Part shown: piece by piece, positions 3,134 to 25,837 of the stretch
How the letters are laid out: every line of letters begins with the position of its first letter
Numbering within the stretch: the stretch's first letter is position 1
NCBI GenBank assembly: GCA_937625935.1
Contig: OW569344.1
Coordinates: 496,001-560,000 of the forward strand
DNA length: 64,000 nt
DNA from: Tetramitus jugosus
Lineage: Eukaryota > Protista > Heterolobosea
Reading direction: 5' to 3'
Notes under the pieces: generated by a model
Told to the model about the DNA's origin: nothing
Database searches by the model: none
Seen by the model: only the letters and a program-made list of their open reading frames with translations
Made by a program: the position numbers and the translations under genes

Positions 3134-6100
3134 TTAATTGTTCAGAAGATCACTCTTAATCTTGTTCACCATCTTACTCATTGCATCTTCGCCCTTGCCA
3201 GCAGATGTGATCGTTTGTCCCTTCTTCTGGCTGGCCTGATTCTTCTTTTGATTTTTGAGTTGTTCGGCCTTCGTTGCCTGAATACACTTGTCGAACTTTA
3301 GGAGGAATTCAGAGATTATGCCAAAAAACTCAGTGGTTTCAGTCTTCTCAATTTCTTGATCCTTGTATGCGTAATACTTCAGCAATGCATGATATTCCTT
3401 CTTAACAGCGGCGAGTCCTAGTTCAATCTGATCACACTTCTTTCTCGAATCGTTGTAAAATTGAGTAGCAATCTTCATGAATGGATCGTCATCGTCCACG
3501 TGTTCCTTTACCTTTTTTACCTGGGCTTTAAACTTATTGAATCCAGCCGCTATTGTTCCAATTCCCTTTGTCAAACTGTCCAAACTTGTCCCCTTAATTT
3601 CATGAACAATTTTGAGATCATCAGACATATTGACTAGATCTGGTCTGGAGGAGACAGCAGTATCAATGGCGTATTGCAATAAGCTGATTTTGTTTGTCTT
3701 GTCCTTTGTTGCATCAATCTTTGGCAACACTTTTAAGTGAAAACCATCGGCTTGTCCTTTCGGCGTATCTCCATTGAGATAATTACCCATAGACAGTAGA
3801 TAGCCGAGCAAGTACGGAAAGTCTTTGTTATTCTTGATCAACTCGATAGCCTTTTTCATGGAATCTAATGGTGATATCATCGTGGAAACATTATTCTCAA
3901 ATTCGTGCATAAACACCCAGCAATCTAGTCTGGTCGCGAATTCAGGTATAGTAATAATCATAAGCATGTACTTCTCGGCCTCCGTGAAATTCTTCATTGG
4001 TTTGTTCTTGTACTTGTCCTTGAATTCTTTCATATCTTCGTTGGTAGGCATATTTTGGATGATGATATCAATTTGATCTTTTGAAAGAGACTTACTATCA
4101 AGCTCAAGAATAGCCTGTTGAAGTTTGGCAGGTTTAGGTAATTTCCTCAACATAATAGATAGATTTTGAAATAACTTTGCATCAATAAGAGGGGCATTTT
4201 CAGGAGCTACCTCTTTCTTTTCAACTCTTTTCGCAGTAGGTGGAGCCTCTCTCTTAGCAAACATACTCTCAAACTCCTTCATATCAAACTCTCCCTCCTT
4301 GACTCCTGTCCATATTGTCCCTGCGCCTTGGGGTGTGTTTGTTAAGATTCTATCCCAAAACAAACCCTTCATCTTTCTCTGCGGTACGATCTTGGGTTTT
4401 GTAGGTTGTCCTGGTCCTCCAAACCCTCCTGGCCTGAATCCGCCCATCATAGGTGGAGGCATTCCGCCCATCATCGGTGGAGGCATTCCGCCCATCATCG
4501 GTGGAGGTGGCATTCCACCGCCCATCATAGGAGGTGGAGGAGGTCCACTCATCATAGGAGGAAGCATGCCACCCATCATTGGAGGTGGTGGTGGAGGCAT
4601 ACCGCTCATTGGGGGTGGTGAAGACATGATGCCACCCATGGGAGGAGGTGGAGGAGGTAGGCCACTCATCATAGGAGGTAGTGGAGGCATAATACTGCCC
4701 ATCATTGGAGATGGCGGAGGCATACCAGCCATTGGTGTTGGTGGAGGAATACTACCAGTAATTGGGGAGAGTAGAGGCATGCCACTTATCGGAGGAGGTA
4801 TTCCACTACCATTCATAGGTGGTGGAGGAGGTATGTTTCCACCCATTGGTGGAGGAGGTATTGCACCGATAATCATACCATTACTTGAAGAAGGTACTGT
4901 ACCTCCAATTATTATTGGAGGTGGGGGTGATGATGTACTTGATGGTGAGGATACACTCACTTCGGGTGCCATAGTAATGTTTGTTGTCTTGTTGCTACCG
5001 ATTTGTTGATTTGTTGGAGTCTTAGTAGCTGGCTCTGTTGTGACTTGAGACCCAGTCATTGGTGGAATAAAGTCGTCACCATCAAAATCGGGTGGTGGAG
5101 GCGGAGGTACATAGTCATCCTCTTCATGTACGAAATGAGCTTGTCTCTCAAGTCGCTCTTGCAATTCCTTCACTTTATCTCTCAATTTTTGCATTTCTAA
5201 CGTGATCTCAGGACTAATCCTCTCATCTTTCCCTTCTTCCTCATCGTCTGAACTGTCAAATGGATCGCTTGGCTTTATAGACTGTTTACGTTGGACAACA
5301 GTTGGCTTTCTTGATGGTATTAAATTATTGAACTCCCGGTTGCTCATAAACCGATGTACAAGTTCTCTTCTTGTTTTCTGTAACATTTCATACTCACTTG
5401 ATAACTCTAGTTCCATCTTATCATACATGCTCAGATCGATGACCTCCCCTGCGATTAGATCACCTGACCTGTCTCCTATCCTTGATGTTGGATAGCTTTT
5501 TGGAAGGTATCCACACTGTATTGACATCATTTCCAGGGTTTCATGACACCTACTCAACTCAGCTCTCATCAACTTAATGAGTGGCTGCTGTCTCTGGTAT
5601 TCAAATAATTTTTCTTGAGTTTGTTCATACTTTACTGTCATTCGCTCCCATTCCTTCTTGTACTTTTCAGATTCATACCACGACCGAGGAATTGAATAAT
5701 TTGAAATCTTTTGCAATATATGAAGCTGGTCCTTAATCGCTGGATATTCAGATTCATTTAATCCCTTCAAAATAGGTCTCAACTCTACTTTTTCCCATTG
5801 GAAAATTAACTTCTTTTTCTTTTCCTCTGTTTTGCTCTTACTCAGCATAATATTCATGACAGCAAGGGTATTTACTTGTACATCAAGATCTCCACTTCGT
5901 AACAAGTGCATAAAGTTCTCATATGGCTCCTTTGTTTTAGTCTTGGAAATGGACTCTTTGGCCGCTTCCTTGACTAAAGCGAGACCATTCTCAAGATAAC
6001 TTACGAATACAAGTAGCAATTCGAGCGCATTTTTGTAAATTGTTAAACCATACTCTTGTGTGGTATCTGTCAGATTATAGATCTCTCCAACAATTCTTGG

Positions 6101-6674
6101 AGAATCAGAAATAACATTCATTGCACTGACATAAACAAGAGCTGCTCTCAACCCAGCGAGACAGTATGCCTGTAAATTTCCTTTGGACCGATTGATAAAA
6201 GTTGACAAGATAGCTATACCATCATTCTCAATGAACTCTTCTGCGAATGAAGGATCTTGCATGGTATCTTTCAATTTAAACAACACTTTTCCTTGGGCAA
6301 CCTTGTCATTGTCGTGAATCACTTCAATAATCTCTCTTGCTTGTATTGCCGGTTTTAATTTGAGAAAGACATCAACTCTCTTGAAATCATGATGTTTGTT
6401 AATACCACTCACAACTCTAAAACACAGTATGTTAAAATGAATTACTCACACTTTCACTTCCAAAAGTAGTCTCTGTTATTTTGCTGGTTGTATCGATGTA
6501 CTCCCCAGAGAAACTGTGGAGTTGTAGTGCATGCTTTTCTCTTCTGATCTCTGGTATCTCAAATAGCTTACAGATCTCTTGGAATTGAGATGGAAAGTCA
6601 ACAGACATATCGTAGTCAAACTTCTTTGAAGTTGTCTGAAGACCTTCAACAAATTGAATGTTGAGATGCAACAT
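3134..6674 (-). CDS. FHOD-type formin (N-terminal GBD/FH3, polyproline FH1, FH2); two exons with a short intron near 6415-6451
   Basis: FH2 motifs MKGLFWDRI, NLSIMLRKLP, GNYLNG..GQADGF; long poly-Pro FH1. The upstream ORF (6432-6689) carries KHALQL..GEYID, like the FHOD N-terminal domain. Exact splice junction and start codon are uncertain. Confidence 0.9.
4420..4930 (-). repeat. FH1-coding imperfect tandem repeats (core 24-nt unit ccgcccatcatcggtggaggcatt at 4440-4507; encodes MPPPMMGG)
   Basis: Directly visible tandem units. Confidence 0.9.
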
Positions 6675-7792
6675 GATATAGAGATACAAGTTTCAACTCC
6701 ACCACAAACACAATCGTTTTTGTTGTCTATCGGATTTTATGGTTGTTGGGGCGACTGAGGACATCGTAAATTGTCGGGCTATTGGAGGGTATTTACCGGT
6801 CTGGTTACGGCTTGAATGACAAAAAATTTCAATGGATGCTTGCGACGTCATATGGTTGTCAGGTTGGTTATGAACCACTAAAGAGAACTGTTCACGCGTT
6901 CTGGGTATTACTGTCCAGACTGAATAAAGCCTTGTTTTATTCTGTCAGAGGTGATGGTTATACCTGAAGCAATTCATCATTGTTCTGTGTTTGATCAATC
7001 AGCTCGTTGCTCATCTCATCAAAAGATCCACCGCCAGATTCGTCATCAGACTCACCAAGCGATTCCATATCAGACTCCACCGGAGAGCTCACTATATACA
7101 GAATGCTCGTCATTAGGCTGACTCACAAACTCACCAATATTTCCAAGTTCATTTCCGTCCTTTGATACTGGGGAGTGCCAGCAACAGTTCATCAATATCT
7201 GAGCGATCCTCTCGGAGCAGAGTTGCCCTTTTCATAATCTCGGCCATGTTATCCGATGTGAGAGGGGTAATTGTGTCGTTGGCTCAGTAAAGCAAACACT
7301 CTTGTATCCAAGAAAGGATAGAAGCTACATCATAGCACACATACTTGCCAGAGGATCCTTCAATCTTAAGATAGACACCTTGCCTCTTCTAGTGGTTCGT
7401 GTGAAATTGGATCGTCCTCTTTCCAGTTGATCGTGTTGCTCTCAGTTGCTCTGTTTGGTTTCTGTATGAAAGTACGTCGAATGTGGCGGAATGTTTACTT
7501 GCCAGATATGAGTATCCTTTCGGTAACATTCAAGATCGGACTTGTATATCACGATGTCAATTGCACCAATACAACCATTTTTGCTTTCAGGTCCGGAAAT
7601 TGCATAACTACCGGTGCTTCCACCATGGTGACAATTTCACAACACAAGACCATAGACCATTGCCATTCTTTGCTTTGCGAGTCGAAATTTTTCTTTTTTC
7701 CCCGCCATTGAAAGTTCAAGCAAATCGAGAGTCAACTCTGCATTACAACAAAAGCACGACAAAATCACGCAACTGTCATCAACACACGAGAA

Positions 7793-8382
7793 ATGTTCTA
7801 TACACACCCAGCCAAAGTTCTAGCTTTTGCAGCCACCTTCCTAGGTGTTACATACATGGCCGCTGCTCCTCCAAGAGAGTATGCAACCTTGATCACCAAG
7901 CACGACGAACAACTCATCCGTGAAAGTAATTATCGATTACATCAAATATTTTGTCTTTTGTTTTTTGTGATCATCTTTTGACATTGTTGTTTTTTCATGA
8001 AATTGTTTAGCCGCTCTTGAAGTCCAAAAGGCTGTTGATGCCAGCAAGACTGTTGAGGAAAACAAGGCTTCCATCTGTTCCCAATTCACTGGTGACAAGC
8101 AAACTGATGTATGTATTGGTTCACTCTTTTTTACTATTCTTCATGTCTGTGAAAGGAGTGTCGTATATTCACACAATATTCTTTTTTTTCGTAATCCTTT
8201 TAATAACACGACAGTGCGAGTCTTTGCTTAACGAGCTTTTCAACGATTTTTCAAAGAACGTGAAGGCCGGAAGTACCGAACAATTACCAAAGAATTTTGA
8301 TGTTGTCAAAGTGTTTGCTAGAAGAGTCGCTAAGAACACTCCAGCTGAGCAGCTTTTGAAACAAAACGCTCATCATCATTAA
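7793..8382 (+). CDS. Small three-exon protein of unknown function (132 aa; N-terminal hydrophobic segment; exons 7793-7925, 8011-8108, 8215-8382)
   Basis: GT..AG introns 7926-8010 and 8109-8214 join three segments in frame. Codon choice (aag, gct, gtc) resembles the RPS13 gene. Confidence 0.75.
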
Positions 8383-8591
8383 ATTTGTAAACATTAATAT
8401 GTGATTGATAAAATTTCGGGTATTCCATTGAATGAGTAACTGGACACTATCTATTATATTTATATTTCCGTTGTGTACCATTGAATGTTGGTAGCAGATA
8501 CGAAATTTGTCACAAAGAGTTTGGGAAATGATAAAAGTACTCGGAACTACATGGTTTAAGAGTCATATTGTGTCACTGTGAATGAACTGTT

Positions 8592-9494
8592 TTATTTTTT
8601 ACGGTAGACAGCCATGTATTTTGACTTGTTCTGATCAGAAGTACGTTGTCCGTCTTCGGATGCATTTTGAATGTAAGGAATCATGACATCGTCCTTCAAG
8701 TCTTCGTCTGGTACTCTCTCAAACATTGGTGATTCATTCAAATGCTTTTGCATCCAATCGCCCAACTCTTGAACATCTGTTATAGTGTAGATCATGCCAC
8801 CCTTCTTGAGCAGGTAAGCGTACTCTGAGATGAGTGTTGGAGAAATGATTCTTCTTCTGTAATTCTTTTTCTTGAAGTGAGGATCTGGGAACATGAATGA
8901 AATCTTTTCCAGTTGTCCCTTCTTGAAGTAACATGGCAAATATTTCATTGCATTTGATCGAATGGCCCACACATTGTTATAATTATGAGTGTCATCACGC
9001 TTGGTCAATTGCTTCACTTGCTCTTGATCGACATTACCAGTGCTAGTGTACATGGCAATCGAGTCGTCCTTTGTTCTCAATTTCACAATTCTCTCCTGTG
9101 TGTAATCCACAACCTTCTTACGAATTTCAATTCCAAGAATTCGGTGTTCCTTATGAAGTGGTGCAACACTGCAAATCAATCCACCATACGCACATCCAAC
9201 ATCCAGAATCGTAACAGCATCCTTGGAGGCATCCCAATCAGGGTACATTTCACTCCAGTTGACCTCTGATGGTTCAGCTGGGTGCTCATAAGTCTCATCA
9301 GCCAATGGATTACAATGAGCACGGACTCTCTTTGGGAAACGAGTAAACTTTTGAAGTTTGCGAAGTTTGTGCTTTGATTGCTTGTCTTCCTGGTCATTGT
9401 TTACATCTTCATTGTTCACCTCTTCGTTAATGCCATTGTCAACAGTAGATGTTTGTGGAGTGGTAGTTGATTCTTCTTCGATTCTTCTCTTCAT
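8592..9494 (-). CDS. TRM8: tRNA (guanine-N7)-methyltransferase catalytic subunit (Trm8/METTL1)
   Basis: RAHCNPL, LDVGCAYGG, LGIEIR, RSNAMKYLP, FPDPHFKKKN, YTITDV motifs. Confidence 0.96.
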   Translation of the reverse strand: MKRRIEEESTTTPQTSTVDNGINEEVNNEDVNNDQEDKQSKHKLRKLQKFTRFPKRVRAHCNPLADETYEHPAEPSEVNWSEMYPDWDASKDAVTILDVGCAYGGLICSVAPLHKEHRILGIEIRKKVVDYTQERIVKLRTKDDSIAMYTSTGNVDQEQVKQLTKRDDTHNYNNVWAIRSNAMKYLPCYFKKGQLEKISFMFPDPHFKKKNYRRRIISPTLISEYAYLLKKGGMIYTITDVQELGDWMQKHLNESPMFERVPDEDLKDDVMIPYIQNASEDGQRTSDQNKSKYMAVYRKK

Positions 9495-9743
9495 GATTTT
9501 GTTGTCGTCGTTATTGTTGCAAATTTGATGTTGAAGATGTGCGTTTTGGTTTTTGTGGGGTGATGATTCTGCTGTGTGAAAAGTCCGCGTTCTTCACTTC
9601 GTCAAACAAATTGAAGACCATCTTCTCCGACTTCCAGTTGTTAACGGAAAAAGAGAGAAAATCTGTGATTGATAAAAGCGCGACACAAGGTTCACATGAA
9701 ATAACACGACAACAGCAGCACAACAGCAGCACACAGCCAAACC

Positions 9744-11948
9744 ATGTCATCTGACCAGAGCAGCAATGCCACTCCGACTAATACTACTACTACCAACAAC
9801 AACAACAACAACAACAATAGCAAAAAGCGTAAAAACATGAATGATAACAACACGAAAAACAATCGAACGTTGATGGACTATTGGGCCAAAAAGTATCATC
9901 AGAGCAGAGAATTAGAAATCAAATCATTGATGATGATGGATTCTACCACTTCTTCCTCTTCCTCGTCATCATCCTCAACATCAGATGAAAAGAGACCCAA
10001 ATTCAATGATTTACTCCTCACAAACAACAATAACAAGCATAATAACAAGTATAATGATAGCAGTAGCAATAGTAAGAATCCAATCGAAGTTGATGAAGAC
10101 ATTTCCATTGTCGATGATCATCCCATTGGAGTTTCATCCTCTAATCAAGATTACAACAAGTGGCACAAGAAATCAAACAAAATTCAACCCAACAACAACA
10201 ATACCAACAATACCAACAATGCTAATACTAATACTAATAATAATACTAATAATACTAATAGTGATGATCGATGGGACTCGAAACATGTAAAATTACCTTG
10301 TTCTTCACACAATACTTTTCTAGTCACTTCTCCCTATCATTCATCTGGAAACTCACTCACCAAATCAACCTCGAAATCAAAGTGGTACCTCATTCAGACA
10401 CTGCTCAAACAACCAATATCCAACGTGTATGAACTGCAAGATCTCATTCAATCCATGAAGAATTGTGGCAATAGTGGACAACAGACATCAATGGACATGA
10501 CCATGTTGTTTGATTTCTTTCAATCGTATATTCCGAGAGAGAGTCGAGATGAGTTTTTTGCGAGGATTTTGCCCTGGATGCAAAAAATGGCACTTCGATT
10601 GCCAGATTTATTGCCCCGTTCCGTACCATTGCTCAAGAAACAGAGAGAATCGAGTGTGGAGTTGACTGCAGAGCAAGTGGCGTGTCTCATGTGTCATGCA
10701 TTCTTTTGTACGTTTCCACGAAGAGACAAATTGAACAATAGAAGAGATCACGAGTACTTTACGTTCCCAAACATTAATTTTACAGAGTTGTATCGTGGAA
10801 CGAGATCGGTGGATACGGAGAAGATGATGGCAGCCAAATTGCAGACTATTGTCCAATATTTTGATCATGTTTCGCGGCACGAGAGTGAACTGAGTGCGAG
10901 AACCATTGGATTTCATCGTCGTGTAATTGCACTGTACAATGGATCGAAGAGTAAATCGACAGAGTATCAACAAGTGCTAGACTACAAGGATGGCGATAGT
11001 GAAAAAGAGGATGATGAAACAGAAGAGGAGAACCCCATATTGACCATGTGGAAGAATAGCACTGAAAAATTGATCAGTTGCAAGGTTTCCCTGGATGGAA
11101 CCATCGAAGATGAGTTGAATTCGAGTCAAGTCGATTTTGCAAACAAGTTTATCGGTGGAGGAGTCATTGGAAGGGGCTGTGTTCAGGAAGAGATTCGATT
11201 CTTGATCAACACAGAATGTATCATATCGAGACTATTTACAGAGGAGTTTGATGACAATGAGTGCATGATTATTCGCGGTGCCAGGCGGTTCAGTAAGTAT
11301 ACGGGATATGCAGACACGTATCGATTCGATGGACCATACGATGGACCAGTGTCAGACAAGGAAGAGATTGTGTGCATTGACGCGTTGAACTTTGTTGATC
11401 GAACCATGTTTCGGTCAACCACAGATCAGTATAAACCTGAGTGGATACAGCGAGAGTTGAATAAGGCCTATTGCTCATTCCAGAAGCTATCGTATGACGC
11501 TTACAATCATGATATGAAGATTGCAACGGGGCATTGGGGAGGAGGAGCATTCAGTGGTGATCGTGAACTCAAGGCTATCATTCAACTCATGGCCGCTTCG
11601 CAAGCCAAACGAGAGGCAGTGTCCTATTTTGCTTATGCCGACGAAGATTTTGTGAAAAAGTTTGATCCCATGTACAGTAACTTGGTCTGCATTGAGGCAA
11701 CAGTAGGCGAGCTGTACACATGCTTAATGGAATATCGAGCTAAGAGAGTGCAAGCCAGACAAAAACAAAAGTCAATAGGCATCATTGGTCGAGTGCCATC
11801 AGTATTGGATTTTGTGTTTGGTTGGTTTGTTGCTGAAACCAACGATCCCTTTGATGAGATACCTCCAACAGAGCCACTCACACAGCCAGAGACAATCTTG
11901 GACACCAGCACAACTGAAAATGCAGAAACAATCCATGAAAAACTATAA
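9744..11948 (+). CDS. PARG: Poly(ADP-ribose) glycohydrolase
   Basis: WDSKHVKLP, AFFCTFP, QVDFANKFIGGGVIGRGCVQEEIRF (GGG-x6-QEE signature), FSKYTGY, RELNKAYC, ATGHWGGGAFSGD. Asn-rich N-terminus. Confidence 0.97.
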   Translation: MSSDQSSNATPTNTTTTNNNNNNNNSKKRKNMNDNNTKNNRTLMDYWAKKYHQSRELEIKSLMMMDSTTSSSSSSSSSTSDEKRPKFNDLLLTNNNNKHNNKYNDSSSNSKNPIEVDEDISIVDDHPIGVSSSNQDYNKWHKKSNKIQPNNNNTNNTNNANTNTNNNTNNTNSDDRWDSKHVKLPCSSHNTFLVTSPYHSSGNSLTKSTSKSKWYLIQTLLKQPISNVYELQDLIQSMKNCGNSGQQTSMDMTMLFDFFQSYIPRESRDEFFARILPWMQKMALRLPDLLPRSVPLLKKQRESSVELTAEQVACLMCHAFFCTFPRRDKLNNRRDHEYFTFPNINFTELYRGTRSVDTEKMMAAKLQTIVQYFDHVSRHESELSARTIGFHRRVIALYNGSKSKSTEYQQVLDYKDGDSEKEDDETEEENPILTMWKNSTEKLISCKVSLDGTIEDELNSSQVDFANKFIGGGVIGRGCVQEEIRFLINTECIISRLFTEEFDDNECMIIRGARRFSKYTGYADTYRFDGPYDGPVSDKEEIVCIDALNFVDRTMFRSTTDQYKPEWIQRELNKAYCSFQKLSYDAYNHDMKIATGHWGGGAFSGDRELKAIIQLMAASQAKREAVSYFAYADEDFVKKFDPMYSNLVCIEATVGELYTCLMEYRAKRVQARQKQKSIGIIGRVPSVLDFVFGWFVAETNDPFDEIPPTEPLTQPETILDTSTTENAETIHEKL
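9794..9817 (+). repeat. (AAC)n coding microsatellite (poly-Asn)
   Basis: Directly visible. Similar tracts occur at about 10190-10260 and 61298-61333. Confidence 0.85.
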
Positions 11949-11956
11949 ATTTTTAT

Positions 11957-13345
11957 TTATTCTTGCGAAACGAGAGGAACAGCAGCCTCGACATCGTTTG
12001 ATGTGTCAATCTTCTCCTTGTTTTCCAAGACGTGCAATAGAGCATACTGAGCGATTGCACTGACAGAAGCCAAACACACGCAGATCAAAAACACAGTGTT
12101 TCTTTCCATTTGACTGACACGGTTCAGTGTCAGTACAACAAACAGATTGGTTGGAACTCTAAAGTAGTTCATGACTGTAGATCTGACATTTTCAGGGATA
12201 TACATGCCCTTCAAAGTACCCATGCATGGCCAGAACATACCAACACATGCTTCATAGACCAAGAATCCAATCATCAGAACAAATCCATTGTCTGGTGCAA
12301 GGATTGGAATGACAAAGGTTAGAGCTGCAGTAGCAAACACGATGAGCAACATCTTTTCCTTCTTGACTTGCTTTGCTCCGAGCAATGAGAACAATGAACT
12401 ACCAATCATCACAGCAACCATAAAGCATGCAAACACGAGTCCATGATTCAAATTGGAGATGGAGCGATCCAAAGTAGGGGTCCACATGAACACAAAGATG
12501 TACATGGCAGATTCAAACATGCTCTGAGCCAATCCCAGTGCAGCAACTTTAAAATCGTTTGTCAGAGTGCTGAATCCTTCAACAAAGCTCTGCTTCACAT
12601 CAACAGATGAGTTTCCATAGTTCTCTGTCCACGTGTAAAAGATGATCACACCTCCAATCACCAACAACACAATTGCAGTGTCAAATGGAGCAGTCATCGT
12701 TCCAAAGAAGCTCTTGACTTGAGAAGCAACCAAACCACTCAAAATCGCAATGATACCATTGCCAAACACTTGTAAATAAAAAGTGTGGCCCAACCACTCT
12801 TCACTGTAACCTCTCTTGAAGTGCTCAGACACCATCCAAGACTCAAATGCAGAAAACAGAATACTAGTCGCAATACCACCAGTCAATCTTCCAAGCATCA
12901 AGACAAAAAAGGAACTAGAGTGCTTTGTAGCACAGGAAATGATATAGAGAACCACATAGATCATACAGCTCAGCTTTCTTCCACTATAATGATGAAAAAT
13001 GTGAGCAAAAAAACAACAACTGATCAACCCAAAAAAACAGTCAAAGCTAACATACAATTTATCACTCAGAGAGCCAACAAAAGTACCAAAAATCATAGAG
13101 CTACCAAATCCTGCGATAAACAACAGTCCAATATCCTTGATGGAAAAACCATAGCTTTCATACAGAGCATACACATAGGGACCTTGCATCCAATCAGAAG
13201 CAGACATGATTAGATAAACGGACACATACGTCAGTTGAAACTTTTTAAAGTCATCAGAAGTGGTTGGAGTGACTTGATTGGTTCTGTTGTAGATGACAAG
13301 TCCCGCACAAATGATGGACAGTGCGATAAAAAAGAAGAGTATCAT
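11957..13345 (-). CDS. MFSD5: MFSD5/MOT2-family molybdate-anion transporter (MFS); intron 12984-13055
   Basis: DWMQGPYVYALY, GRLTGGIATSILFSAFESWMVSEH, WTENYG, FESAMYIFVFMWTP, MNYFRVPTN. Removing the 72-nt GT-AG intron restores SLSDKFGRK. ATG placed at 13345. Confidence 0.92.
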   Translation of the reverse strand: MILFFFIALSIICAGLVIYNRTNQVTPTTSDDFKKFQLTYVSVYLIMSASDWMQGPYVYALYESYGFSIKDIGLLFIAGFGSSMIFGTFVGSLSDKLYVSFDCFFGLISCCFFAHIFHHYSGRKLSCMIYVVLYIISCATKHSSSFFVLMLGRLTGGIATSILFSAFESWMVSEHFKRGYSEEWLGHTFYLQVFGNGIIAILSGLVASQVKSFFGTMTAPFDTAIVLLVIGGVIIFYTWTENYGNSSVDVKQSFVEGFSTLTNDFKVAALGLAQSMFESAMYIFVFMWTPTLDRSISNLNHGLVFACFMVAVMIGSSLFSLLGAKQVKKEKMLLIVFATAALTFVIPILAPDNGFVLMIGFLVYEACVGMFWPCMGTLKGMYIPENVRSTVMNYFRVPTNLFVVLTLNRVSQMERNTVFLICVCLASVSAIAQYALLHVLENKEKIDTSNDVEAAVPLVSQE

Positions 13346-13497: not shown

Positions 13498-14076
13498 ATG
13501 ATTGGAAACGTCAATGCATCCATCCAGGATACAGTGCAACAGCTATCAAAGCTCCATTTGCTCTCTCGAGAATCATTCCAACCGTATGGTGACGTAATTG
13601 AGATTCCTACTGGTGGAGATGTCACTGAGGCCAATCAAGGCACAGCCAACAAGTTTCATTACCTAGCTGACATTAGTAATCTGCGTCAGGGCACTGCAAA
13701 GGCCAATCTGTGCATTTTCAAGTGTCAACCTCGCAATAGCAACGGTGCAGAATCATTTAGAGTCAAGATCCTTGAGAGACATCCCTTTAGCAATCAGATT
13801 TTCCAACCCATTGCCGATCGATATCCAATTCGTTACATTGTGATTGTCGCTCTCAATGATCCGGAGACTGATAGGCCTGATTTGAGAACACTCAAGTGTT
13901 TCTTGGCTCATGGTGGTCAAGGTGTAAATTATAGAGAGGGATGTTGGCATCATCCAATGATTGCATTGGATGAAGTGACAAACTTTATGGTCTTGGTTCA
14001 CGAAGATGGAACAGAGGGAGACTGTGAAGTGGTAGATATCGAAGCTTTTGATCTACCAATTCCAAAGTTGGAGTAG
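13498..14076 (+). CDS. DAL3: Ureidoglycolate lyase (AllA/Dal3 family)
   Basis: LSRESFQPYGDVI, ANQGTA, LERHPFSNQIF, GQGVNYREGCWHHPMIAL. ATG at 13498. Confidence 0.94.
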   Translation: MIGNVNASIQDTVQQLSKLHLLSRESFQPYGDVIEIPTGGDVTEANQGTANKFHYLADISNLRQGTAKANLCIFKCQPRNSNGAESFRVKILERHPFSNQIFQPIADRYPIRYIVIVALNDPETDRPDLRTLKCFLAHGGQGVNYREGCWHHPMIALDEVTNFMVLVHEDGTEGDCEVVDIEAFDLPIPKLE

Positions 14077-14140
14077 ATGACTGTATTATTCATAAATAAA
14101 CAACCTTTGTACTTTATAAGGTAAGAATTAGAAGGAAATT

Positions 14141-16027
14141 TTACAAGGACGAAACAAGGAATGCAGTGTTAGCAACCTTTGGGAAACGTTTTGACTTCTT
14201 CAGTGCTTCCAAGGCTTGACCCTTGTCATGTGGATCGTCTCTGGTTCCTAAAGCATACAACACTCTCTCCAATGTTGGTCTGCTCTTGGAATCTTGGACA
14301 AGCTTGATCAAAATCTTTTGAAGAACATTCATCAGAGAATCGAGTTGAGCATCAGGTACTTTGACCTTGAATTGAGTTCTCATCTCTTGCTTCACGTCCT
14401 TGGCAGTCTGGTTGACCATGTGTTCAAATCCACCTGCGGCCTGAACTTGCTTGTCAAGAATCTTATGCTTGGTGTAGAACCACAAGAGGGAGTTGGAGAT
14501 TTCAGCAGTCGCCAAATCCTCCATCTTATTATCAACAGCTACAGCACCGTTTCTATTCAACAAGTACATTGCCATATACAACAAGACGACTCTAATGTCA
14601 CCACGGAATGTATCAATATTGTAAGGCTTTGGTAGTTGATCACTTGTTGGTGCGTTGAGCAAGTCAGGTCTAGAAACAACAATGTCACGAATTTTCTCAT
14701 CGATAGGCTTATGGTGTGGAGTCACCAACAATTGCTTTGCAATTTCGAGAAGACCGATGTGAGCGACCCATGTCTTGCTAGCTCCGTAGAACTGACGTTC
14801 TTCAGCCTTGTTCTTCAAACTGGATTGAAGAATTTGTTGATTTTCACGTTCGCGGATTGATAGATCAGGGTGAGAGCTTGGCAATGTAGCATTCATACCA
14901 CCAATGAACATGATACCATAATGATGACAGAGTTGAGCAGTTCTTACCTGATACTTCTTCAACAAGTTGACGTCAGTGGTCACATCGTGCTTGCTAGGCA
15001 AAATGGTGTTGACAGTCTTTCCATCAATTTCAGCTCTTGTGTGTTCAGCAATTACTTGAACATAAGAGTACAAGTAGTCCCATCTACCACAGTTCACACC
15101 GATCAATCTTCCCTCGAATGCCTCAATCATTCTTGGCAATTGGAAAACAGCAGGGAACGTCTCTGCTAGGAACACAGTCTTGATTGTTCCCTCAGGCAAA
15201 TGGAACAAGTTCTCAATACGAGTGAGCACTTGGTGCCACATGGCTGCTTCCTGATACACTTGCATCTTTGGAATATAGAGCAATGGAGTCACATTCTTTT
15301 GCAAGAGTTCTGGCAATGAGAATTGAGCCCAGAATGCAACATCAAAGAATGGTGCAACCAATGGCTCATTTGATTTCTTGTCAATCACGTGAGCTTCAAT
15401 ACAGTGAAGGCCTCTAGGACGGAATGAACATGGTGGGATTCTGTCCTTGTACTTCAACTTGTAGAGCTTGTTGTTAAAGTCGACTTGTGCATCACCAGAG
15501 ATCAAATCTCTATAGTGTCTCAAGTTCTCCAAGATGCTCTCAATCTGTGCACCGTTCGCATCCTCTCCGCAACACATCCAGCAAACTCTTGGTCTATCAT
15601 CACCACTCTGTCTCGAGATATCCTGATTGATCTCATTAATGTAGTTGAATGCATTGATACCCATGCGATTCAATGCATTACCAGTCATTTCCAAGACACA
15701 ACTTGCATAATTGTCATAATTCTTGACATAGCTTCTTGGCTTCCAGTTTGGTGTTGGTCTCATGAGCTGCAACGATTGACTCAATTGGCCCTGATCAATC
15801 TTTTGTTGCATTTCCTGTCTAAATTTCATAATCTGATCTACTTGTGGACCAAATGCTCTGTCTAGCTCAACAGCTAGATTCAATGCCTTGCTCAGAGCAC
15901 CACTCGATGCATCATTGCTGCTATTGTTATTGTTGATCTTTGAGGGAAGATCAGCAAAATACTTGGAAAACAATGGCTCACACAGTACCTTGTACTGTGA
16001 AGATGACAGTGTGTTGGTGGTATTCAT
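14141..16027 (-). CDS. aceB: Malate synthase (MSA/AceB type), divergent; C-terminal SSL
   Basis: RPRGLH, LYIPKMQ, GTIKTVFLAETFPA, GVNCGRWDY, IGGMNA, TWVAH, MEDLATAEIS. Start placed at the MNTTNT ATG (16027). Confidence 0.93.
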   Translation of the reverse strand: MNTTNTLSSSQYKVLCEPLFSKYFADLPSKINNNNSSNDASSGALSKALNLAVELDRAFGPQVDQIMKFRQEMQQKIDQGQLSQSLQLMRPTPNWKPRSYVKNYDNYASCVLEMTGNALNRMGINAFNYINEINQDISRQSGDDRPRVCWMCCGEDANGAQIESILENLRHYRDLISGDAQVDFNNKLYKLKYKDRIPPCSFRPRGLHCIEAHVIDKKSNEPLVAPFFDVAFWAQFSLPELLQKNVTPLLYIPKMQVYQEAAMWHQVLTRIENLFHLPEGTIKTVFLAETFPAVFQLPRMIEAFEGRLIGVNCGRWDYLYSYVQVIAEHTRAEIDGKTVNTILPSKHDVTTDVNLLKKYQVRTAQLCHHYGIMFIGGMNATLPSSHPDLSIRERENQQILQSSLKNKAEERQFYGASKTWVAHIGLLEIAKQLLVTPHHKPIDEKIRDIVVSRPDLLNAPTSDQLPKPYNIDTFRGDIRVVLLYMAMYLLNRNGAVAVDNKMEDLATAEISNSLLWFYTKHKILDKQVQAAGGFEHMVNQTAKDVKQEMRTQFKVKVPDAQLDSLMNVLQKILIKLVQDSKSRPTLERVLYALGTRDDPHDKGQALEALKKSKRFPKVANTAFLVSSL

Positions 16028-16348
16028 GACTTGTTGTGAAGTTGTTGTGTTTGTTGATGAAGGGGTCGTGTGATCAGGGAAAAGAAAGCACACAAGATGA
16101 ACTTTAGCGCAGTGTTGCACAGAGAGGGAAAATATCCTTGTTTTGGTTTAAATTTGACTCTTATTGCTCCGCTCGGAAAACTTTTGGGACGACGGATAAC
16201 GCTCGCTCTTATTTTTAGTTCACGAGATTTTTCTCCTGCTGCATGTCAATTGGTTGTTGTGAGATCAGAACTTGCAAAATCGTTGCTGGCTCCAATCAAA
16301 AACAAAACGAATCCAGTTCTCTTGCATAAAGAAATAATATTAGGTAAA
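16028..16348. promoter_or_regulatory. About 320-bp divergent promoter region, malate synthase / allantoicase
   Basis: Head-to-head start codons. Function inferred from position only. Confidence 0.55.
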
Positions 16349-17606
16349 ATGAGAAACAAGCTTGTACTCCTTCTTGCTCTTGTAGCCTTGTTCGTGTACA
16401 GTGCTCATGCTGTCCAAGTCGTGATCAATGAAGTACGTATTTCTTTTCGTTTAAAAAGCTTTTGTTTCTTCACATATGTGGAATGTTTGGTCTAATCTTA
16501 TTCATTGACCTTTTCTCATTTGTTTTTTTGTGCAATAGAGTGGTCAACAAACAGTGTCATCTTCGTTGACATCCAAGAGCTACAATCCGTTGACTTTTAC
16601 TCCTGTTGCTGACCCAAAGGAGTTTTCTGAAATGGTTGACTTGCTCCAAGAAAAATTGGGCGGCAAATGTCTGTCGTGTACAGATGAATTTTTCGCCGAG
16701 TGCTCCAATCTCGTCAAACCAGGCAGAGGCATCACCAACAATGAATACACTGAGAATGGAAAGTGGATGGACGGTTGGGAGTCCAAGAGAAAGAGAGATG
16801 CTGGTCATGATTCTGCCATCTTGAAGCTAGGCCTCGCAGGTATCATCAAGGGCGTGGATATCGACACCAACAACTTTATTGGTAACTATCCATATTATGC
16901 ATCGTTGGATGCTGCCAATGTTGAAGAGGGAAAGGACACTGATGTTCAATCAATTGAGTGGACAAACATTCTGCCAAAGGTGCCACTCAAGGCTACTAGT
17001 CAGCATTTGCTCAAGATTGATCCAAGGTTTTATGCCACAAAGTTTACTCATGTCAAGTTGCACATTTATCCTGATGGTGGTGTTGCTCGTTTGAGAATTT
17101 ATGGTGATGTGACCTATGATCTCAGAAAGGCAAGTGGAAGTGTTGTCGATGTTGCTGCTGTTCAAAACGGAGGTGTTGCCATTGCATGCAGTGATCAACA
17201 CTTTGGTGTCAAGAGTAATTTGCTTGCTCCTGGCAGAGGTGTCAATATGGGTGATGGATGGGAGACCAAGAGAAGAAGAGGTGCCGGAAATGACTGGGTC
17301 ATCATCAAGTTGGGTGCAACTTGTACTGAGATTGACAAGATTGAAGTAGACACTGCTCATTTCAAGGGTAACTATCCTGATACTTGCTCTGTTGAAGGAA
17401 ACTATTTGGAAGATTCTCATGGTGCTGATATCGCTCTCGGATGGCAAGAAGTTCTACCAAAGACCAAGCTTCAAGCACACACTCAGCATTACTTCTCTGG
17501 AAAGCAATTGAGTGATTATGCTAGAAACACAAAGATTAACTACGTCAGGTTGAACATTTTCCCTGATGGTGGTGTCAGTAGATTCAGAGTTTGGTGCAAA
17601 GTTTAA
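16349..17606 (+). CDS. ALLC: Allantoicase (two allantoicase repeats) with a signal-peptide exon; exons 16349-16432 and 16539-17606
   Basis: DEFFA, WMDGWESKRKR, DIDTNNFIGNYP, IYPDGGVARLRIYG, MGDGWETKRRR, VDTAHFKGNYP, IFPDGGVSRFRV. Phase-0 intron 16433-16538 (gtacgt..caatag) is in frame. Confidence 0.95.
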
Positions 17607-17733: not shown

Positions 17734-19923
17734 TTACTTGGCAGTAAATAGGAACTGTACAATCCATATGGATATGATAGATATGAATACCAAGAGAGGC
17801 AAACTCAAAGACGAGTAGGAGCCATTCGTACCTGAAGCCCTTGGTTCAGAGTTCTTTGGCGAGTGTCCATGAGATGTCGAAGGTAGCGAGATTTGAGGTT
17901 CTGATTGACGTGGATTCGGCAGTGAAGGAGATGGAGCAGGAGAGGGTGTTGGCTTCTCTGATGAGGAAGGAGCTGGAGAAGATTGAGCTGGTGGTGCAGA
18001 AGGGCTTGGATTAGGTTGTCCAATTTCCCGCACAACACCATTGAGGCATATATGTGTTGCTTCGTTATAACAGGCAGCACCACAGCACTTCTGACCATTT
18101 GCTCCACATTCTGATAAGCGACACTGATCCTCAGCAATACCTCTGTTCAATATTCCATACACATGCACATTGGCATCTCGACTTGGATCATTCGAGAAAG
18201 TACCGATATACACTCGACCATTGGCCACGATTGGAGGATTGAACTTACCAAAAACACCGACAGAATCTCTTCCATTCATTTGACTGTTCCAGAGTTCAAC
18301 TTTGACATCTTCAGCATCGAATGCTCTTAACATACCAGATCTCAATCCATGATTCGCATTACCATCGATTGTGTGATAGGCCCACACAACTCCACTCTTT
18401 GGCTGCGACCCAAGTGCTGACAGAGACAAAATACCACCAGGATACTCTGCTATTGGTACATTGGACATTTCAATGTTGCCCATATCGAAAACACCCAAGT
18501 TTCCATTCGGTATCAAGCGCAAAGCTCTGAGATTGCTGTTGGCAGGCCAATAATAGATTCTCTTTCCCTTGGTTGGAGAGTCCCAGACTACACCAGCAGC
18601 ATGGACACCATAGTAGAATGCCTCAGGTGTAGTAACATCAGGTCTAAACGTTTGAGTGTTTACATTGTAGCTCGGATTATATCCTCCCATATTGTTCTTA
18701 TTGGCCATGTAGCAATTACCAGATTTGGCGCAAACAACACACAAATCCGTTCCTGGAATCAATACGATGCCTCCCGTAGCAAAGTCCAAGTCCCACTCAT
18801 ACAATAGTGCCTGATTGAATGGAGCAAAGTGATCTGTTACACCGTTGAGTACATTTGCGTATTCTCCAACATTGTTACCCTTGTTATTCAAGTCAACCTT
18901 GACGATTGAATCTCCATAATTTTTCGCTCCTGGGTTGTACTCTCCGTTCGCTGTTCCAAAGTACACAAAGTTGCCTTCGACTGCAGGTCCTGAGCCACCC
19001 ATCCACAATGAACCTCCTTCTTCGTTTGGAGTTGTGCAGAACACGTGTGTTTGTTGGAGAGATCCTGCATCGTAGCCCAATAACCATCCGTGCCATGGAC
19101 TCGTGAAACAATAGGTTCCAAATGAAACGAGCACTGTTCCACTGTCTGTCAATGCGAGAGAAGCTCTTTGTAGCTGAGAGATGTGATCAAGGACGAGAAC
19201 ACCATTAGCACTTCCTGCTCCCACACCCTGTACCTTGGCTACAATGTCCACTGGGCCCGGAGCTCTAACATCACCAGAACTAATATCGATTGAATATAAG
19301 ACGTGCTTGAGAACAGGTGGATTCGTGGATATCTTATTGACAGCAGCTACGTAAATATTGCCTCTAGATAAATCAATCACCGGAGTGGAGGCGATTCCCA
19401 CTTCTACGGATATATCCCTGTAATCTCCACAACTCAGACCAACAATTCGATCTGATATAGGAACAGATGGACCTACATTTATTTGCCAGAGAGGATCAGC
19501 TCGATTAGGATCAATAGCGTCAAAGGCATAAAGATTGTTTGCCATGGTAGCCTACAAACAAGGAAAAATTTGTCAGGACAGAGTTTACAATAGATCAAAA
19601 ACAAAATCTCAAAAAGTATCACATACCACAAATATGACATCGTGTTTTCTGTTTGTAGACCTTATGTACAAGTTAGGGACATACAATACTTGTGCGTACA
19701 CTTGACCAACAACCTTCCTGGTGAACAATTTACCAAAATTTTGTGGATTGACGGTGGTCGTATTCAAATACTTCTCCACGAGAGTCGCACCTGTTCTCTG
19801 ATTGTTGTACGCGCGAGTGGTGATGGGTACTTGAGCATTTACCCAGAACGGCGTCCAACAGAGTGCCAAGCAGAACAAGATTAAGAATAAAAATAGCTTG
19901 AGAACCCCTGAAGTATTGTGCAT
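17734..19923 (-). CDS. Secreted/GPI-type PQQ-like beta-propeller protein with a Cys-rich module and Pro/Ser stalk; intron 19552-19626
   Basis: Signal peptide; YNNQRTG..FGKLF..GQVYAQ; GIASTPVID; HGWLLGYDA; DLDF; LRAFDA..ELWNS; PPIVANGRVYIGT; C-terminal hydrophobic tail. The 75-nt phase-0 intron is in frame. Confidence 0.8.
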
Positions 19924-20181
19924 GTGGGATTTTCTCAAAATGAGAGTGTGAGAACGGTCCATTATAGTAATACTATGGAGTGTTCTTTGGTGACAATTGG
20001 ATATAATTTGTTATTGTTGCTCAGGTTCTCTGCTGGTTTGTCTGCTGTTTTAGTACCAGTGCTTTTTCGACCCGAGCCAGTGCATAAAATCATGTTATCG
20101 CGGCGGATGATGGATAACAGAAATAGATACCCATCGATTGTGTGGAACTGCAAGACCACAAACACCAAACGACGAGCTGAT

Positions 20182-23100
20182 TTAGGGTATGGCATTGTCC
20201 GATACAATCTCAGTCAGTGGAAGAGGAGGCATTTTCGCACCACTACCGCCAGTCACATTGGGCCGATGTGAGTGAGTATCCTCAAAGACGTCCTCCTCGG
20301 AGTCTTCTTCGACAGGCGATAGAGACATGGGAGATATAAAGAGATTCCTGGTAGGGACACGAACACCAAGAGAATTCTCAGAAATAGACATATCGTGATC
20401 AGTTGGGAGCATAGGGCTATCAATCAAGTCCATCTCGGGTCCAATTGTAAATGATACCGGTTCATCTAGGAGCAGTGGTTTCTTTCTAACTGGTTGACAG
20501 ATGAAGAGACAACACAAGCCACAGAAAGAGAACCCGAGCAACATGGCAATAGTGACGAGAGAAGAAACAAGTCTTCCGTTCGAAGGTTTTCCAGGTGGCA
20601 CAGGAGGTACGACAATATTGGTGGGAGACGAGAGGGAATGCAGTTCATCCACGTAAGCTGAAGTGAGATCGAATCCCCAAAAGTTGTTCCAATATCCTGC
20701 AGCTATAATTCCACCAGAGCCTTTGGACTTGATATCCTTTGTTACAATCAAATAGTCAGGGATGTGCAGTCCCGATGCCACAGGTATCATTCGAGCAGCC
20801 AAATTGACACCTTCAAGACTTGTACCAGCAATGACCAAGGCAAGACGAGACAGATGACTTGCAGGACCAGGTGATGCAATATTGGGCAGTGCTGCTAGGA
20901 ATATGCATCCCAGTGGATCCTCTGGTTCAATCATGTTGTGACGAGAGTTGAACACATAGTCGCCCAACGATATTTGACTTCTATTGCCATGAAATCGTAC
21001 AGGAAAATATTTTGCAAAGTATTGACTCACAAGATTCGTATGTGGACCTCCGATTAAGAGCAAATTGGAATCACTCTCACTGTACTCACTGGTAACAAAA
21101 TCAGAGTCCTTAATAATTGGGACATAATGCTTGCCGACGATATAGAGTTGATTACTGAGTAAAATGGCTTGCTTTTCATACCACGTGGCTTCTTCGGCAG
21201 ATCCCAGGGTTCCCACGATAATAACAGTAAACTTCTCAAACACTATTCTCATTGGGCCATAATTGTCTGGATTTCTCTCATAAAACGTCCATGTTACACC
21301 CTCGCACGTTTTCCATTTTCCTGTAGAATCTTCTTTGCAGAAATGAATGGAAGGATAAAGATTAGGAGTAACTGGTATGGGATCGGATTGATCAATCCGA
21401 ATAGTAGTTGGCAATTCATAACCTTCTACTTCTTTGATACCAAATCGCCTAATGTTGGATGTTTTGAGATACCATTCATTTGAGAAGCGAGACACTCTAA
21501 TTTTGCCAATTCGGAAGGGAATCGTGAGTTGAAGGGGTAGAATTCCACCTTTTCCTCCAAAGCCATGTGGATTCATGCATGTAATTGTAAATGTAGCAGG
21601 CAATTCAGGTTTGATAGATGAATCATTACCAAGATACTGATTCATAAAATTTCTTGTGTCCTTATCGTTCAAGATACTATCCCACCAATGACCAACACCG
21701 GGTATCTCACTTACAATACTATCGGACATATTGCCTGATATTTGGGCATGAATACGAGCCATTCTTCGAGGATGCCATGGACTAACATTATCGTCAATAG
21801 CACCTGTTCGTGTCATGAGAGGTACACCTTTCATATTCTCCATGTGTAAATCAGGATTATGCTCATAGATTGAACTCTCTAGCAATCCCTTCAGAACAGC
21901 ATCAGTAAAACTGATATCATTTCGGGTGAAGTATGGAATATATTGGTGATGAGTGGTCCATCCAGACACACACATAGATCCCAAGGCCAGATCAGGGTTC
22001 ATTGTTGATATTAAGAAACAGCTATGGAACAAAAGGATGTTAGAAATCTTTCACTATTCGCCATTCGTTTTGAAACATATTTAAATGCAATGATTCATAC
22101 CCATGACCTCCCATTGAATGACCTGAGAAGAATAATCGATCAGTGCTCGGGGGTTTATCTTGAAGTTGTTTGGAGCTGAGAGAAGCTTCCAATGCTTTGA
22201 CTGCTGAATAAGCATTGTTGATTTGAGGTCCAGTCCAATCGTATCCATATCTTCGACGTCCGCTAGGTGCAATAATCCATGCGTGATCAAATTGTCCATA
22301 GTATCCAATGAGCCACTCTGCTCTACTTCCAGCACCGTGCGTAGCAACGATAATTGGGCACTTGGATTTGTGCATGGATTTGCATGATTTCTTCGGTGGA
22401 ACAGCCACAGCATACTGTACAGTTTTGTCCAAATCGACAAATGTATAGGTAAATGGTTGATATGTGTCCACATCAACAAGCGTTAGATTGTGACTGATGG
22501 GTTCGATCAGTCCCTTTTCAGTATTGATATTTACAAGTAAAGATGATGAATCTGAGAGATCGGCTCTGATTGGAAGCAGTACGGTTTGACCGGGTTGTAT
22601 CACTGGTGATGTGACAAAAGAAGCCGGTTTTGCATCCTTCTTCTCATTCACAATGGATACTTTGAATCCTTGCAGTACACTATCACCAGTATTGAGTATC
22701 GGAATGGACAAATAATCGCCATAGGAATGTCCTTGCTTGTCTCTCGAAGGAACAACAGAGTCCCACTTTACAAAATATTGTGGATTTGTCAAATTACGAA
22801 ACTGCAAGTGAATGGTGGCAGATTGGATGGCACTCTTCTTGATCCGTATCGTGTGATCACCCTTTGATAACTGCACAACGTTCCAACCATATCCAAGCCC
22901 ATACAAATCACCCATAAAATCCCATTTTTCATCAATGGTAAACAGAGCACACGACCCACAATTCACCAACACCTTACCCTCCACTTGCACATGAAAAGAA
23001 GCATAGATCCACGAATAAAACAATGCACCTGCCAATCCATACGGTTCAGTCATCATTTTCCACCGAACACCATCCGTCTCATTATACGAAATCTCAATTT

Positions 23101-23506
23101 CATCCTCAAATCCCACCTCTTCATCAAACGTTCTTTTGCTCGCTTCCAATCTCTTCCATTTGACTCGTCCACCATCACCCAACTCACTAGGATAACTCAA
23201 TTCTTTGTCATCTACCGCCGCCGCCATCGTCATCATCCAATTTTTCCAAATGCTCTCAATCGAACCAAAGCTCTCCAACACATCACTTCCAATTTCTCTG
23301 TTACCAATGGGAAATGGTCCCAATACGTGATAAACGGTTGGCATTCGAATGGGCACACTCATTGAGTTCGACGTCTCTTGTTTTTGTTCTTGTTGTGGTT
23401 GCCTCGTTGGTGATGCACCACCAAGGCACATGAACAACAACAATAAAAAGATGAACAATGATGATGATGTGAACCGTTGTTGTTTATCAGTGATCATTAT
23501 CATCAA
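20182..23506 (-). CDS. Secreted single-pass alpha/beta-hydrolase (peptidase S9/esterase-like); intron 22022-22100
   Basis: Signal peptide; HGAG; GHSMGGHG|C after splicing; GAIDDNV (Asp); GHWW (His); C-terminal TM and cytosolic tail. Confidence 0.85.
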
Positions 23507-24754: not shown

Positions 24755-25837
24755 TCATAGAGCAGTCAGTGGTGTCCGTAAGTCCTTCAAATCGTTTGAT
24801 TTCTTTTGGAATGATGAGACTATACATAGTGTCAGGAATACACAAACAACTCCAACGACTGAACCCATGAAGAAGAAGCCAAATGAAAAAACTATTATCC
24901 TCTTTCTTGGACTTGTCTGTCCTTCCAATGTAACAAATGCACACTCTTTCGATTCAGGCGTATCGGCGCACACAATGTACTTTAATGTGGCGTAGTCATC
25001 CACACAAGTGATAGGAGGAAGAGCAACACCAGTCTCGTCGAATCTCCGCTTCACGTCTTCCTTCAGCTTCAATATAGATCCTGATGTACAAGTCTCCCCT
25101 ATACTATCATTCTTCAACAGTAAGATCTGTAGGGACGTGATATTGGGCGTTGATAGATTCGGTAATTCAAAGCCTGCAAAGAAGGAAGCAGTCTTATAAG
25201 CGGTGCCATGATGTGCACTCAACAAAACGTGAACATCGCCTCGTGCATTTGCTGCAAATCGCCGACTACTCTGTGCCCAGAACGATACCATTGCACCAAG
25301 TGTCTCATTTGAGCTCAGAACCTGCCCAAACGGACACAACTCCTTGTAATCTACACCGTTCACACAATCCAAACTCGTCGAATTATCTTCACCCGTACAT
25401 CCACAAAAGGTTAAACGATTCACAGCTCGGCCCAGCACCGTGTCTTCCAACGTGACAAAATTCTGTGGGAAATTATTGGAGAGCACATGAGCAACGCGAT
25501 CCGTGTTACTCCAGAACAGTGATTTATCTCTAGGTGCCATGAGCAACTCATTGGGCAGCTCATTGAAGAATGGTTCAAAATCAGCAAGAGACACACTCGA
25601 GGAAGCCTTGGATACCCATACAGAGGCAAAATTTTCATAAATTCTTGCACAGTCAACTGCTGTGGACGATACATTGGTCATGACATCTGTGTTGACGATG
25701 ATTGCCTCAGAACACCTTCCCACGACAATTTCTCTCAAGTGAGGTGTCGTAGCTACCGTTATGCCGCCAAGCACAAGTGACGAATGCAACAGGAGGAGAA
25801 AAAGCAGAGGGGCAAGAAGAATTTTGGTCGAAAACAT
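24755..25837 (-). CDS. ADP-ribosyl cyclase / NAD glycohydrolase, CD38/CD157 family; signal peptide plus C-terminal TM
   Basis: TTPHLREIVVGRC, VDC, SLFWS, FVTLEDTVLG..LTFCG, SFWAQSSRRFA..ARGDVHVLL, SFFAGFELPNL, ETCTSGSI..L; Cys pattern. Confidence 0.9.
   Translation of the reverse strand: MFSTKILLAPLLFLLLLHSSLVLGGITVATTPHLREIVVGRCSEAIIVNTDVMTNVSSTAVDCARIYENFASVWVSKASSSVSLADFEPFFNELPNELLMAPRDKSLFWSNTDRVAHVLSNNFPQNFVTLEDTVLGRAVNRLTFCGCTGEDNSTSLDCVNGVDYKELCPFGQVLSSNETLGAMVSFWAQSSRRFAANARGDVHVLLSAHHGTAYKTASFFAGFELPNLSTPNITSLQILLLKNDSIGETCTSGSILKLKEDVKRRFDETGVALPPITCVDDYATLKYIVCADTPESKECAFVTLEGQTSPRKRIIVFSFGFFFMGSVVGVVCVFLTLCIVSSFQKKSNDLKDLRTPLTAL

Follow-up and report, generated by a model that had tools for sequence, protein, structure and literature searches.

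The window analysed in this study is a stretch of 64,000 nucleotides from the heterolobosean amoeba Tetramitus jugosus (GenBank assembly GCA_937625935.1, contig OW569344.1). It corresponds to 496-560 kb of chromosome C1, which is 699,783 bases long; the assembly searched contains 26,350,207 bases in 56 records. The published genome of T. jugosus CCAP 1588/3C measures 26.3 Mb, in 55 scaffolds and a mitochondrion, with a chromosome 1 of 0.7 Mb and a G + C content of 41% (PMC11106597). A model that read the bare sequence (the original prediction) had placed three adjacent genes in this window, for ureidoglycolate lyase (UGL), malate synthase (MS) and allantoicase (ALC). Family scores and the gaps of 64 bp and 321 bp between the genes confirmed this arrangement (Table 1). 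No gene intervenes between ALC and MS. The cluster occupies C1:509-514 kb and, at 186 kb from the chromosome end, is not subtelomeric.

All three genes were covered by RNA contigs from two independent RNA runs. In both runs the spliceosomal intron of ALC, also part of the original prediction, was spliced out exactly; a DNA run retained it. Transcription was judged from assembled contigs, which give no expression ranking. RNA contigs cross the convergent gap between UGL and MS, where the 3' untranslated regions probably overlap. Within the promoter region between MS and ALC, positions 16116-16279 were free of RNA contigs, showing that the two divergent transcripts are separate. A metagenome scan returned two contigs only, both of transcript length. 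Misassembly, for which a check had been proposed, was rejected: an independent groundwater DNA contig covers positions 13691-16473 (the 3' part of UGL, the whole of MS and exon 1 of ALC), and the linkage is seen in relatives. A recent foreign insertion was ruled out by the G + C content of the cluster, overall and at third codon positions, which resembles that of the neighbouring genes, and by the intron of ALC. Assuming 10,000-16,000 genes in the genome, the chance that any three of 11 pathway genes are contiguous is 4e-6 to 1e-5.

Table 1. Features of the UGL-MS-ALC cluster and its neighbour (window positions), and other purine-catabolism genes of T. jugosus (chromosomes)
Feature	Position	Strand	Remarks
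MFS_5 (PF05631) transporter	11957..13345	-	head-to-head with UGL, 152 bp between; possibly associated
UGL (ureidoglycolate lyase, AllA/DAL3 type)	13498..14076	+	192 aa, PF04115
Convergent UGL-MS gap	14077..14140		64 bp stop-to-stop; crossed by RNA contigs
MS (malate synthase)	14141..16027	-	628 aa, PF01274+PF20659+PF20656, divergent malate synthase A
Divergent promoter region common to MS and ALC	16028..16348		321 bp ATG-to-ATG
ALC (allantoicase) exon 1	16349..16432	+	28 codons, signal-peptide-like hydrophobic stretch
ALC intron	16433..16538	+	106 nt, phase 0, GT..AG
ALC exon 2	16539..17606	+	two PF03561 repeats
Allantoinase	C21		TIGR03178 over cut-off
Uricase	C25		
OHCU decarboxylase	C23		
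HIU hydrolase	C32		
Two xanthine-dehydrogenase-family (molybdoenzyme) genes	C34, C38		

UGL scored 152.6 bits against PF04115 (cut-off 23) and matched Escherichia coli AllA with E=1.5e-24, the LERHP and WHHP motifs being aligned; its scores lay under the lineage-specific NCBIfam cut-offs. The gene is single copy (one genome match). The protein has no obvious targeting signal, and P0137 has the same N-terminus. ALC, which was searched exon by exon and not as a joined protein, scored 393 bits against TIGR02961 (cut-off 278) and contains two PF03561 stretches. The leader encoded by exon 1 reaches a maximum 11-residue hydropathy of 3.45. Among 120 homologues, a hydrophobic leader was present in 4 full-length amoebal relatives and in none of the remaining 116 hits. 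It is also found in the relatives L004 and L030 and in a second T. jugosus copy on C33, with the intron at the same codon in all three. The C-terminus of ALC has neither an endoplasmic reticulum (ER) retention ending nor a type 1 peroxisomal targeting signal. In a literature search of mostly open-access papers, no description of a signal-peptide allantoicase was found.

The C33 copy of ALC is intact, is 90% identical to the clustered one and is only 13 kb away from the end of its chromosome (L026:1107-2448, at about 451-452 kb). Its catalytic exon shares 88.5% DNA identity with that of the clustered gene, and it carries a second intron, common to L030 and missing from the clustered ALC. Either the C33 gene is an old paralogue that has undergone gene conversion, or the intron was lost in the clustered copy.

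MS scored 147 bits against PF01274 and has both accessory MS domains. Against TIGR01344 it scored 223 bits, far under the equivalog cut-off of 594.5, and it is about 27-34% identical to other malate synthases; it is a divergent subfamily, placed as an MS-family protein with a malate synthase A (MSA) fold. A structure model (pLDDT 93) matched the MSA structures 3CUZ/3CV2 best, with a TM score of 0.84-0.86 by target. Residues R203, E289, D317 and D504, corresponding to E. coli R166, E250, D278 and D447, are kept; they comprise the catalytic Arg, the Asp base and the Mg-binding Glu/Asp. In the ITGP...KMVINA segment (acetyl-CoA site) TG, M and NA are kept and two prolines are altered.

Some eukaryotic MS-like proteins, described in fish, are ureidoglycolate lyases, marked by the loss of Arg276 and Trp365 (PMC10120013). 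If the divergent protein were, or doubled as, such an enzyme, the cluster would yield no malate. The low TIGR01344 score is in line with this, as is residue 153, where the whole heterolobosean clade has Cys in place of the conserved ADFED Asp. However, R315 and W420, the equivalents of the two residues altered in MS-like lyases, are kept in 8 of the 8 clade members shown, a dedicated UGL adjoins, the gene is the sole MS of a genome that contains isocitrate lyase (ICL), and in the relative L016 its orthologue is paired with ICL. We consider a lyase role very improbable. Because a dedicated UGL adjoins and L016 pairs the orthologue with ICL, true malate synthase activity is likely. MS ends in SSL, and its Acrasis orthologue in SKL; the enzyme is probably peroxisomal. 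The original prediction had allowed for a second MS linked to ICL, which did not hold: no second MS, ICL-linked or otherwise, was found in the genome, and ICL, which has no targeting signal, lies on C1 at 335 kb from MS. The sole MS must also serve the glyoxylate cycle.

Inspection of synteny in relatives, as proposed with the prediction, showed that ALC-MS or MS-UGL was kept amid scrambled flanks. In L004 (MS 69%, ALC 65% identical) ALC diverges from MS over a promoter of 140 bp and converges with allantoinase. The L004 run SSF-cactin-allantoinase-ALC-MS-SRP54-unknown corresponds to C26, C4, C21, C1, C1, C31 and C11 in T. jugosus; seven genes are thus spread over six chromosomes, and 1 of 6 adjacencies, ALC-MS alone, is kept. 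The SSF gene was tried as a DUR3 urea transporter and rejected, as it best fits generic sodium/solute symporters. In L006 the convergent MS-UGL pair is kept, while the orthologue of the next gene is on C4. On the JGI contigs L005 and L006 one MS gene is preceded by two flanks that are GC-rich and unrelated to each other, with a G + C step from 0.6 to 0.4; L005, as well as L006 at its left end (L006:1-1800), appeared chimeric and was set aside as upstream context. In SRR25336392 UGL and MS converge on one contig, and ALC is on a second contig, flanked on its right by the same neighbours, but this is a near relative and carries little weight. Linkage is kept selectively while the flanking gene order scrambles. 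In Acrasis kona, whose MS is the closest named one (50% identical), no pathway genes were called in 10 kb flanks.

The linkage might chiefly concern the sole MS. Head-to-head pairs would form easily in these compact genomes, and glyoxylate-producing partners could drift beside MS under weak selection. In L016:1133-5397 (SRR32315874) MS is head-to-head with ICL in place of ALC, in the sample of L004 UGL is unlinked, L030 has ALC without MS within 478 bp upstream, and the intact ALC on C33 is unlinked. Against drift, all the functional partners seen in linkage belong to the glyoxylate pathway, ALC-MS is the sole survivor of six adjacencies, and the triple would arise by chance with a probability of 1e-5 or less. 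We regard weak selection as an improbable explanation.

In the MS tree, the copies linked to ALC or UGL formed a nested group (97 in the Shimodaira-Hasegawa-like approximate likelihood ratio test, SH-aLRT), with ICL-linked and unlinked copies outside; the root within the amoebal clade was weak. The amoebal MS clade, including Acrasis kona, had a very long stem (about 3 changes per site) and no stable sister. A sister position to MS-ICL fusion proteins in a fast tree was lost under a mixture model. The best non-amoebal matches of ALC were bacterial (about 55%, 390 bits); it scored 249 bits against yeast and was about 34% identical to chytrid exons, and the ALC tree contained no full-length eukaryotic ALC. 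The best named relatives of UGL were two chytrids and one EukProt eukaryote.

MS also occurs in bacterial purine operons (PMC10120013), and 2 of 80 bacterial ALC loci, L043 (Melainabacteria, 4537-10358) and L065 (4544-12945), hold allantoinase, ALC, MS and UGL within about 8 kb. It is therefore conceivable that an ancient bacterial operon of this content, or an ancestral four-gene cluster, is now breaking up lineage by lineage. The UGLs of L043 and L065 sit in one subfamily of 12 rows with the amoebal and chytrid UGLs, allantoinase-ALC-MS of L004 and ALC-MS-UGL of the window add up to the same four genes, and bacterial sequences are the best non-amoebal matches of ALC. Yet a grouping of the amoebal ALC with these operons was rejected (p-AU of 0.008 in the approximately unbiased test), and the MS of L043 and L065 is an ordinary MSA with 27% identity to the long-stemmed amoebal MS. 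The genes are oriented differently, MS stands outside a cluster in Acrasis and is paired with ICL in L016, and the amoeba has spliceosomal introns and targeting signals. A four-gene origin appears unlikely, and so does a single bacterial block as the source; yeast or another fungus makes a poor candidate donor. Of the two routes in the original prediction, independent assembly or horizontal transfer, the discordant affinities of the three genes and the rejected ALC grouping favour the former, as an assembly inside Heterolobosea, over transfer in one block. The same discordance, and the low ALC score against yeast, bear out the claim that the cluster was assembled independently of the yeast DAL cluster.

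The other genes of purine catabolism, which were to be located according to the prediction, were found elsewhere in the genome (Table 1). A coupling to the release of purine nitrogen had also been predicted, and this was not supported. In a six-frame search of the genome, urease alpha gave no match with two models, nor did UreG or an NCS1 permease, and models for urea carboxylase and allophanate hydrolase gave nothing over cut-off beyond other biotin carboxylases and one GatA-like amidase. Urea release is predicted at two steps, ALC and UGL. Since no urea-using enzyme was found, all four purine nitrogens would end as urea that the cell apparently cannot use, and the pathway apparently gives no usable nitrogen unless some unrecognised enzyme acts. 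A true analogue of DAL, scavenging nitrogen under limitation, would need such an enzyme or associated bacteria to use the urea. The enzyme families do match DAL2, DAL7 and DAL3 (PMC13751858), but besides the missing urea-using genes and permease, uricase is kept, unlike in yeasts with DAL, and MS has no duplicate. Nitrogen scavenging is, in our judgement, highly improbable.

We think it reasonably probable that the locus is a metabolic cluster that was assembled within Heterolobosea and is selectively kept, joining the producers of glyoxylate from purines to the sole malate-forming enzyme. Its role would probably be the salvage of carbon and the disposal of glyoxylate from prey purines, over several compartments. 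We infer these compartments from signals and C-terminal endings only: uricase ends in SRL and OHCU decarboxylase in HKL, and allantoinase has an N-terminal hydrophobic segment (signal anchor) in both species examined. A bacterivore that digests much RNA is probably not short of nitrogen. Purines of prey bacteria would be converted to urate by the molybdoenzymes, and urate to allantoin by uricase, HIU hydrolase and OHCU decarboxylase, probably in peroxisomes. The signal-anchored allantoinase and the signal-peptide ALC would then yield ureidoglycolate and urea, in the lumen of the secretory system or digestive vacuole or at the surface. Cytosolic UGL would release glyoxylate and further urea, and peroxisomal MS would combine glyoxylate with acetyl-CoA to malate. 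With the urea excreted, the gain per purine would be two carbons and the removal of a toxic aldehyde. The promoter common to MS and ALC would keep MS on whenever ALC is on. Nephromyces (PMC6320678) and early eukaryotes (PMC10120013) have both been suggested to use purine carbon via MS, and glyoxylate toxicity has been put forward as one driver of the linkage of DAL3 and DAL7 (PMC2776167). Only tentatively do we extend this to a DAL-like cluster that evolved independently for prey purine carbon, with luminal or secreted allantoinase and ALC, and in which the sole MS swaps its promoter partner between ALC and ICL from lineage to lineage; this fuller version is possible, though short of probable.

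Several observations weigh against a selectively kept cluster assembled within Heterolobosea. Genomic context was available for about six relatives, some of them on short or chimeric contigs (the left flanks of L005 and L006); the complete triple was on one contig in T. jugosus only, and UGL of the L004 sample was on a separate contig. A grouping with the bacterial operons was not rejected for MS (p-AU 0.115) or UGL (0.073), though it was not recovered. A shared promoter word, ATCAA[AC]AA, chosen from five promoters, was rejected, as it occurred in 2 of 10 independent promoters and in 17 of 79 controls. Signal peptides were called from hydropathy and conservation only, the absence of urease is that of a six-frame search in one assembly, and no transporter for the passage of ureidoglycolate across the membrane was identified.

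The MFS_5 transporter next to UGL is the only PF05631 member of the genome and a candidate for the passage of ureidoglycolate or for molybdate supply; its position beside UGL is not kept in L006 or L011. An in-frame intron is apparent in this gene at about 12984-13055, from the loose end of an RNA contig. Downstream of the cluster, the window contains secreted-looking proteins without a Pfam match at 17734-23506 (one of 603 aa), which are 57-84% conserved in a relative; the open reading frames 20182-22032 and 22040-23506 correspond to a single gene of 1104 aa in L012. An ADP-ribosyl cyclase gene (PF02267, CD38-like) at 24755-25837 is syntenic in L012.

The original prediction had further stated that the three genes lie in the same order as in yeast. 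MS is indeed in the middle in both, but in yeast DCG1 separates DAL2 from DAL7, and an order match of three genes is expected by chance in one of three cases, so that the shared order counts for little. Both clusters physically link ALC, MS and UGL genes that belong to the same families, and both were apparently assembled by relocation. The Saccharomyces DAL cluster comprises DAL1, DAL4, DAL2, DCG1, DAL7 and DAL3 (Wong and Wolfe 2005, reviewed in PMC2776167, PMC13751858). Against these six genes, the amoeba has three, without a permease or racemase (DCG1), and with allantoinase elsewhere (adjacent only in L004). The MS of the yeast cluster is a dedicated duplicate, the amoebal MS the sole copy; yeast has lost uricase and uses urea amidolyase, whereas the amoeba keeps uricase and urea amidolyase was not found in its genome. 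The yeast cluster is subtelomeric, unlike the amoebal one, the sequences are not close, and the amoebal ALC has a signal peptide. The amoebal cluster resembles DAL2-DAL7-DAL3 in its working, yet it is not a DAL cluster and lacks most of the defining DAL features.

Plants degrade urate to allantoin in peroxisomes and then break down allantoin in the ER and secretory system by ammonia-releasing amidohydrolases. The order of compartments would be similar in the amoeba, which has instead a urea-releasing ALC and a UGL without signal. The proposed route of Nephromyces and early eukaryotes likewise leads purine carbon into central metabolism via MS, but those reports (PMC6320678, PMC10120013) deal with gene content and expression rather than linkage, and in Nephromyces neither a UGL nor an ICL has been recognised. 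No published report of an amoebal ALC-MS-UGL cluster was found in our search of mostly open-access literature.

Fungi provide known cases of convergent metabolic clusters (PMC7826186). UGL and ALC were found adjacent and convergent in two chytrid genomes. The genome of Spizellomyces sp. 'palustris' (GCA_006535965.1) contains a cluster of seven genes for purine degradation (L124:10001-20671), namely UGL, ALC, a molybdenum-cofactor sulfurase, a polysaccharide-deacetylase-family gene, HIU hydrolase, an FAD monooxygenase and xanthine dehydrogenase. The deacetylase-family gene may be a PuuE-type allantoinase and the monooxygenase an HpxO-like urate oxidase. No report of this cluster was found in the same search of mostly open-access papers. 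In Gaertneriomyces sp. JEL0708 (L121:397-11949) UGL and ALC are adjacent and convergent, and a molybdenum-cofactor sulfurase lies 7 kb upstream. Purine-gene clustering thus recurs, which makes it less singular than first assumed and more useful for comparison.

Among eukaryotic metabolic clusters born by relocation, yeast DAL is the textbook example, and oxygen avoidance, limited nitrogen and the toxicity of glyoxylate are invoked together to explain it. The amoebal cluster offers a natural control: as uricase is kept and urea is apparently not used, oxygen avoidance and nitrogen limitation do not fit the amoeba, and the glyoxylate link is left as the explanation. If the amoebal cluster did evolve independently to harvest prey purine carbon, it and the chytrid cluster would bring the origins of such clusters in eukaryotes to at least three, which would provide a comparative test of why metabolic genes cluster. 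The amoeba may also offer a living test of the feeding of purine carbon into the Krebs cycle (PMC10120013).

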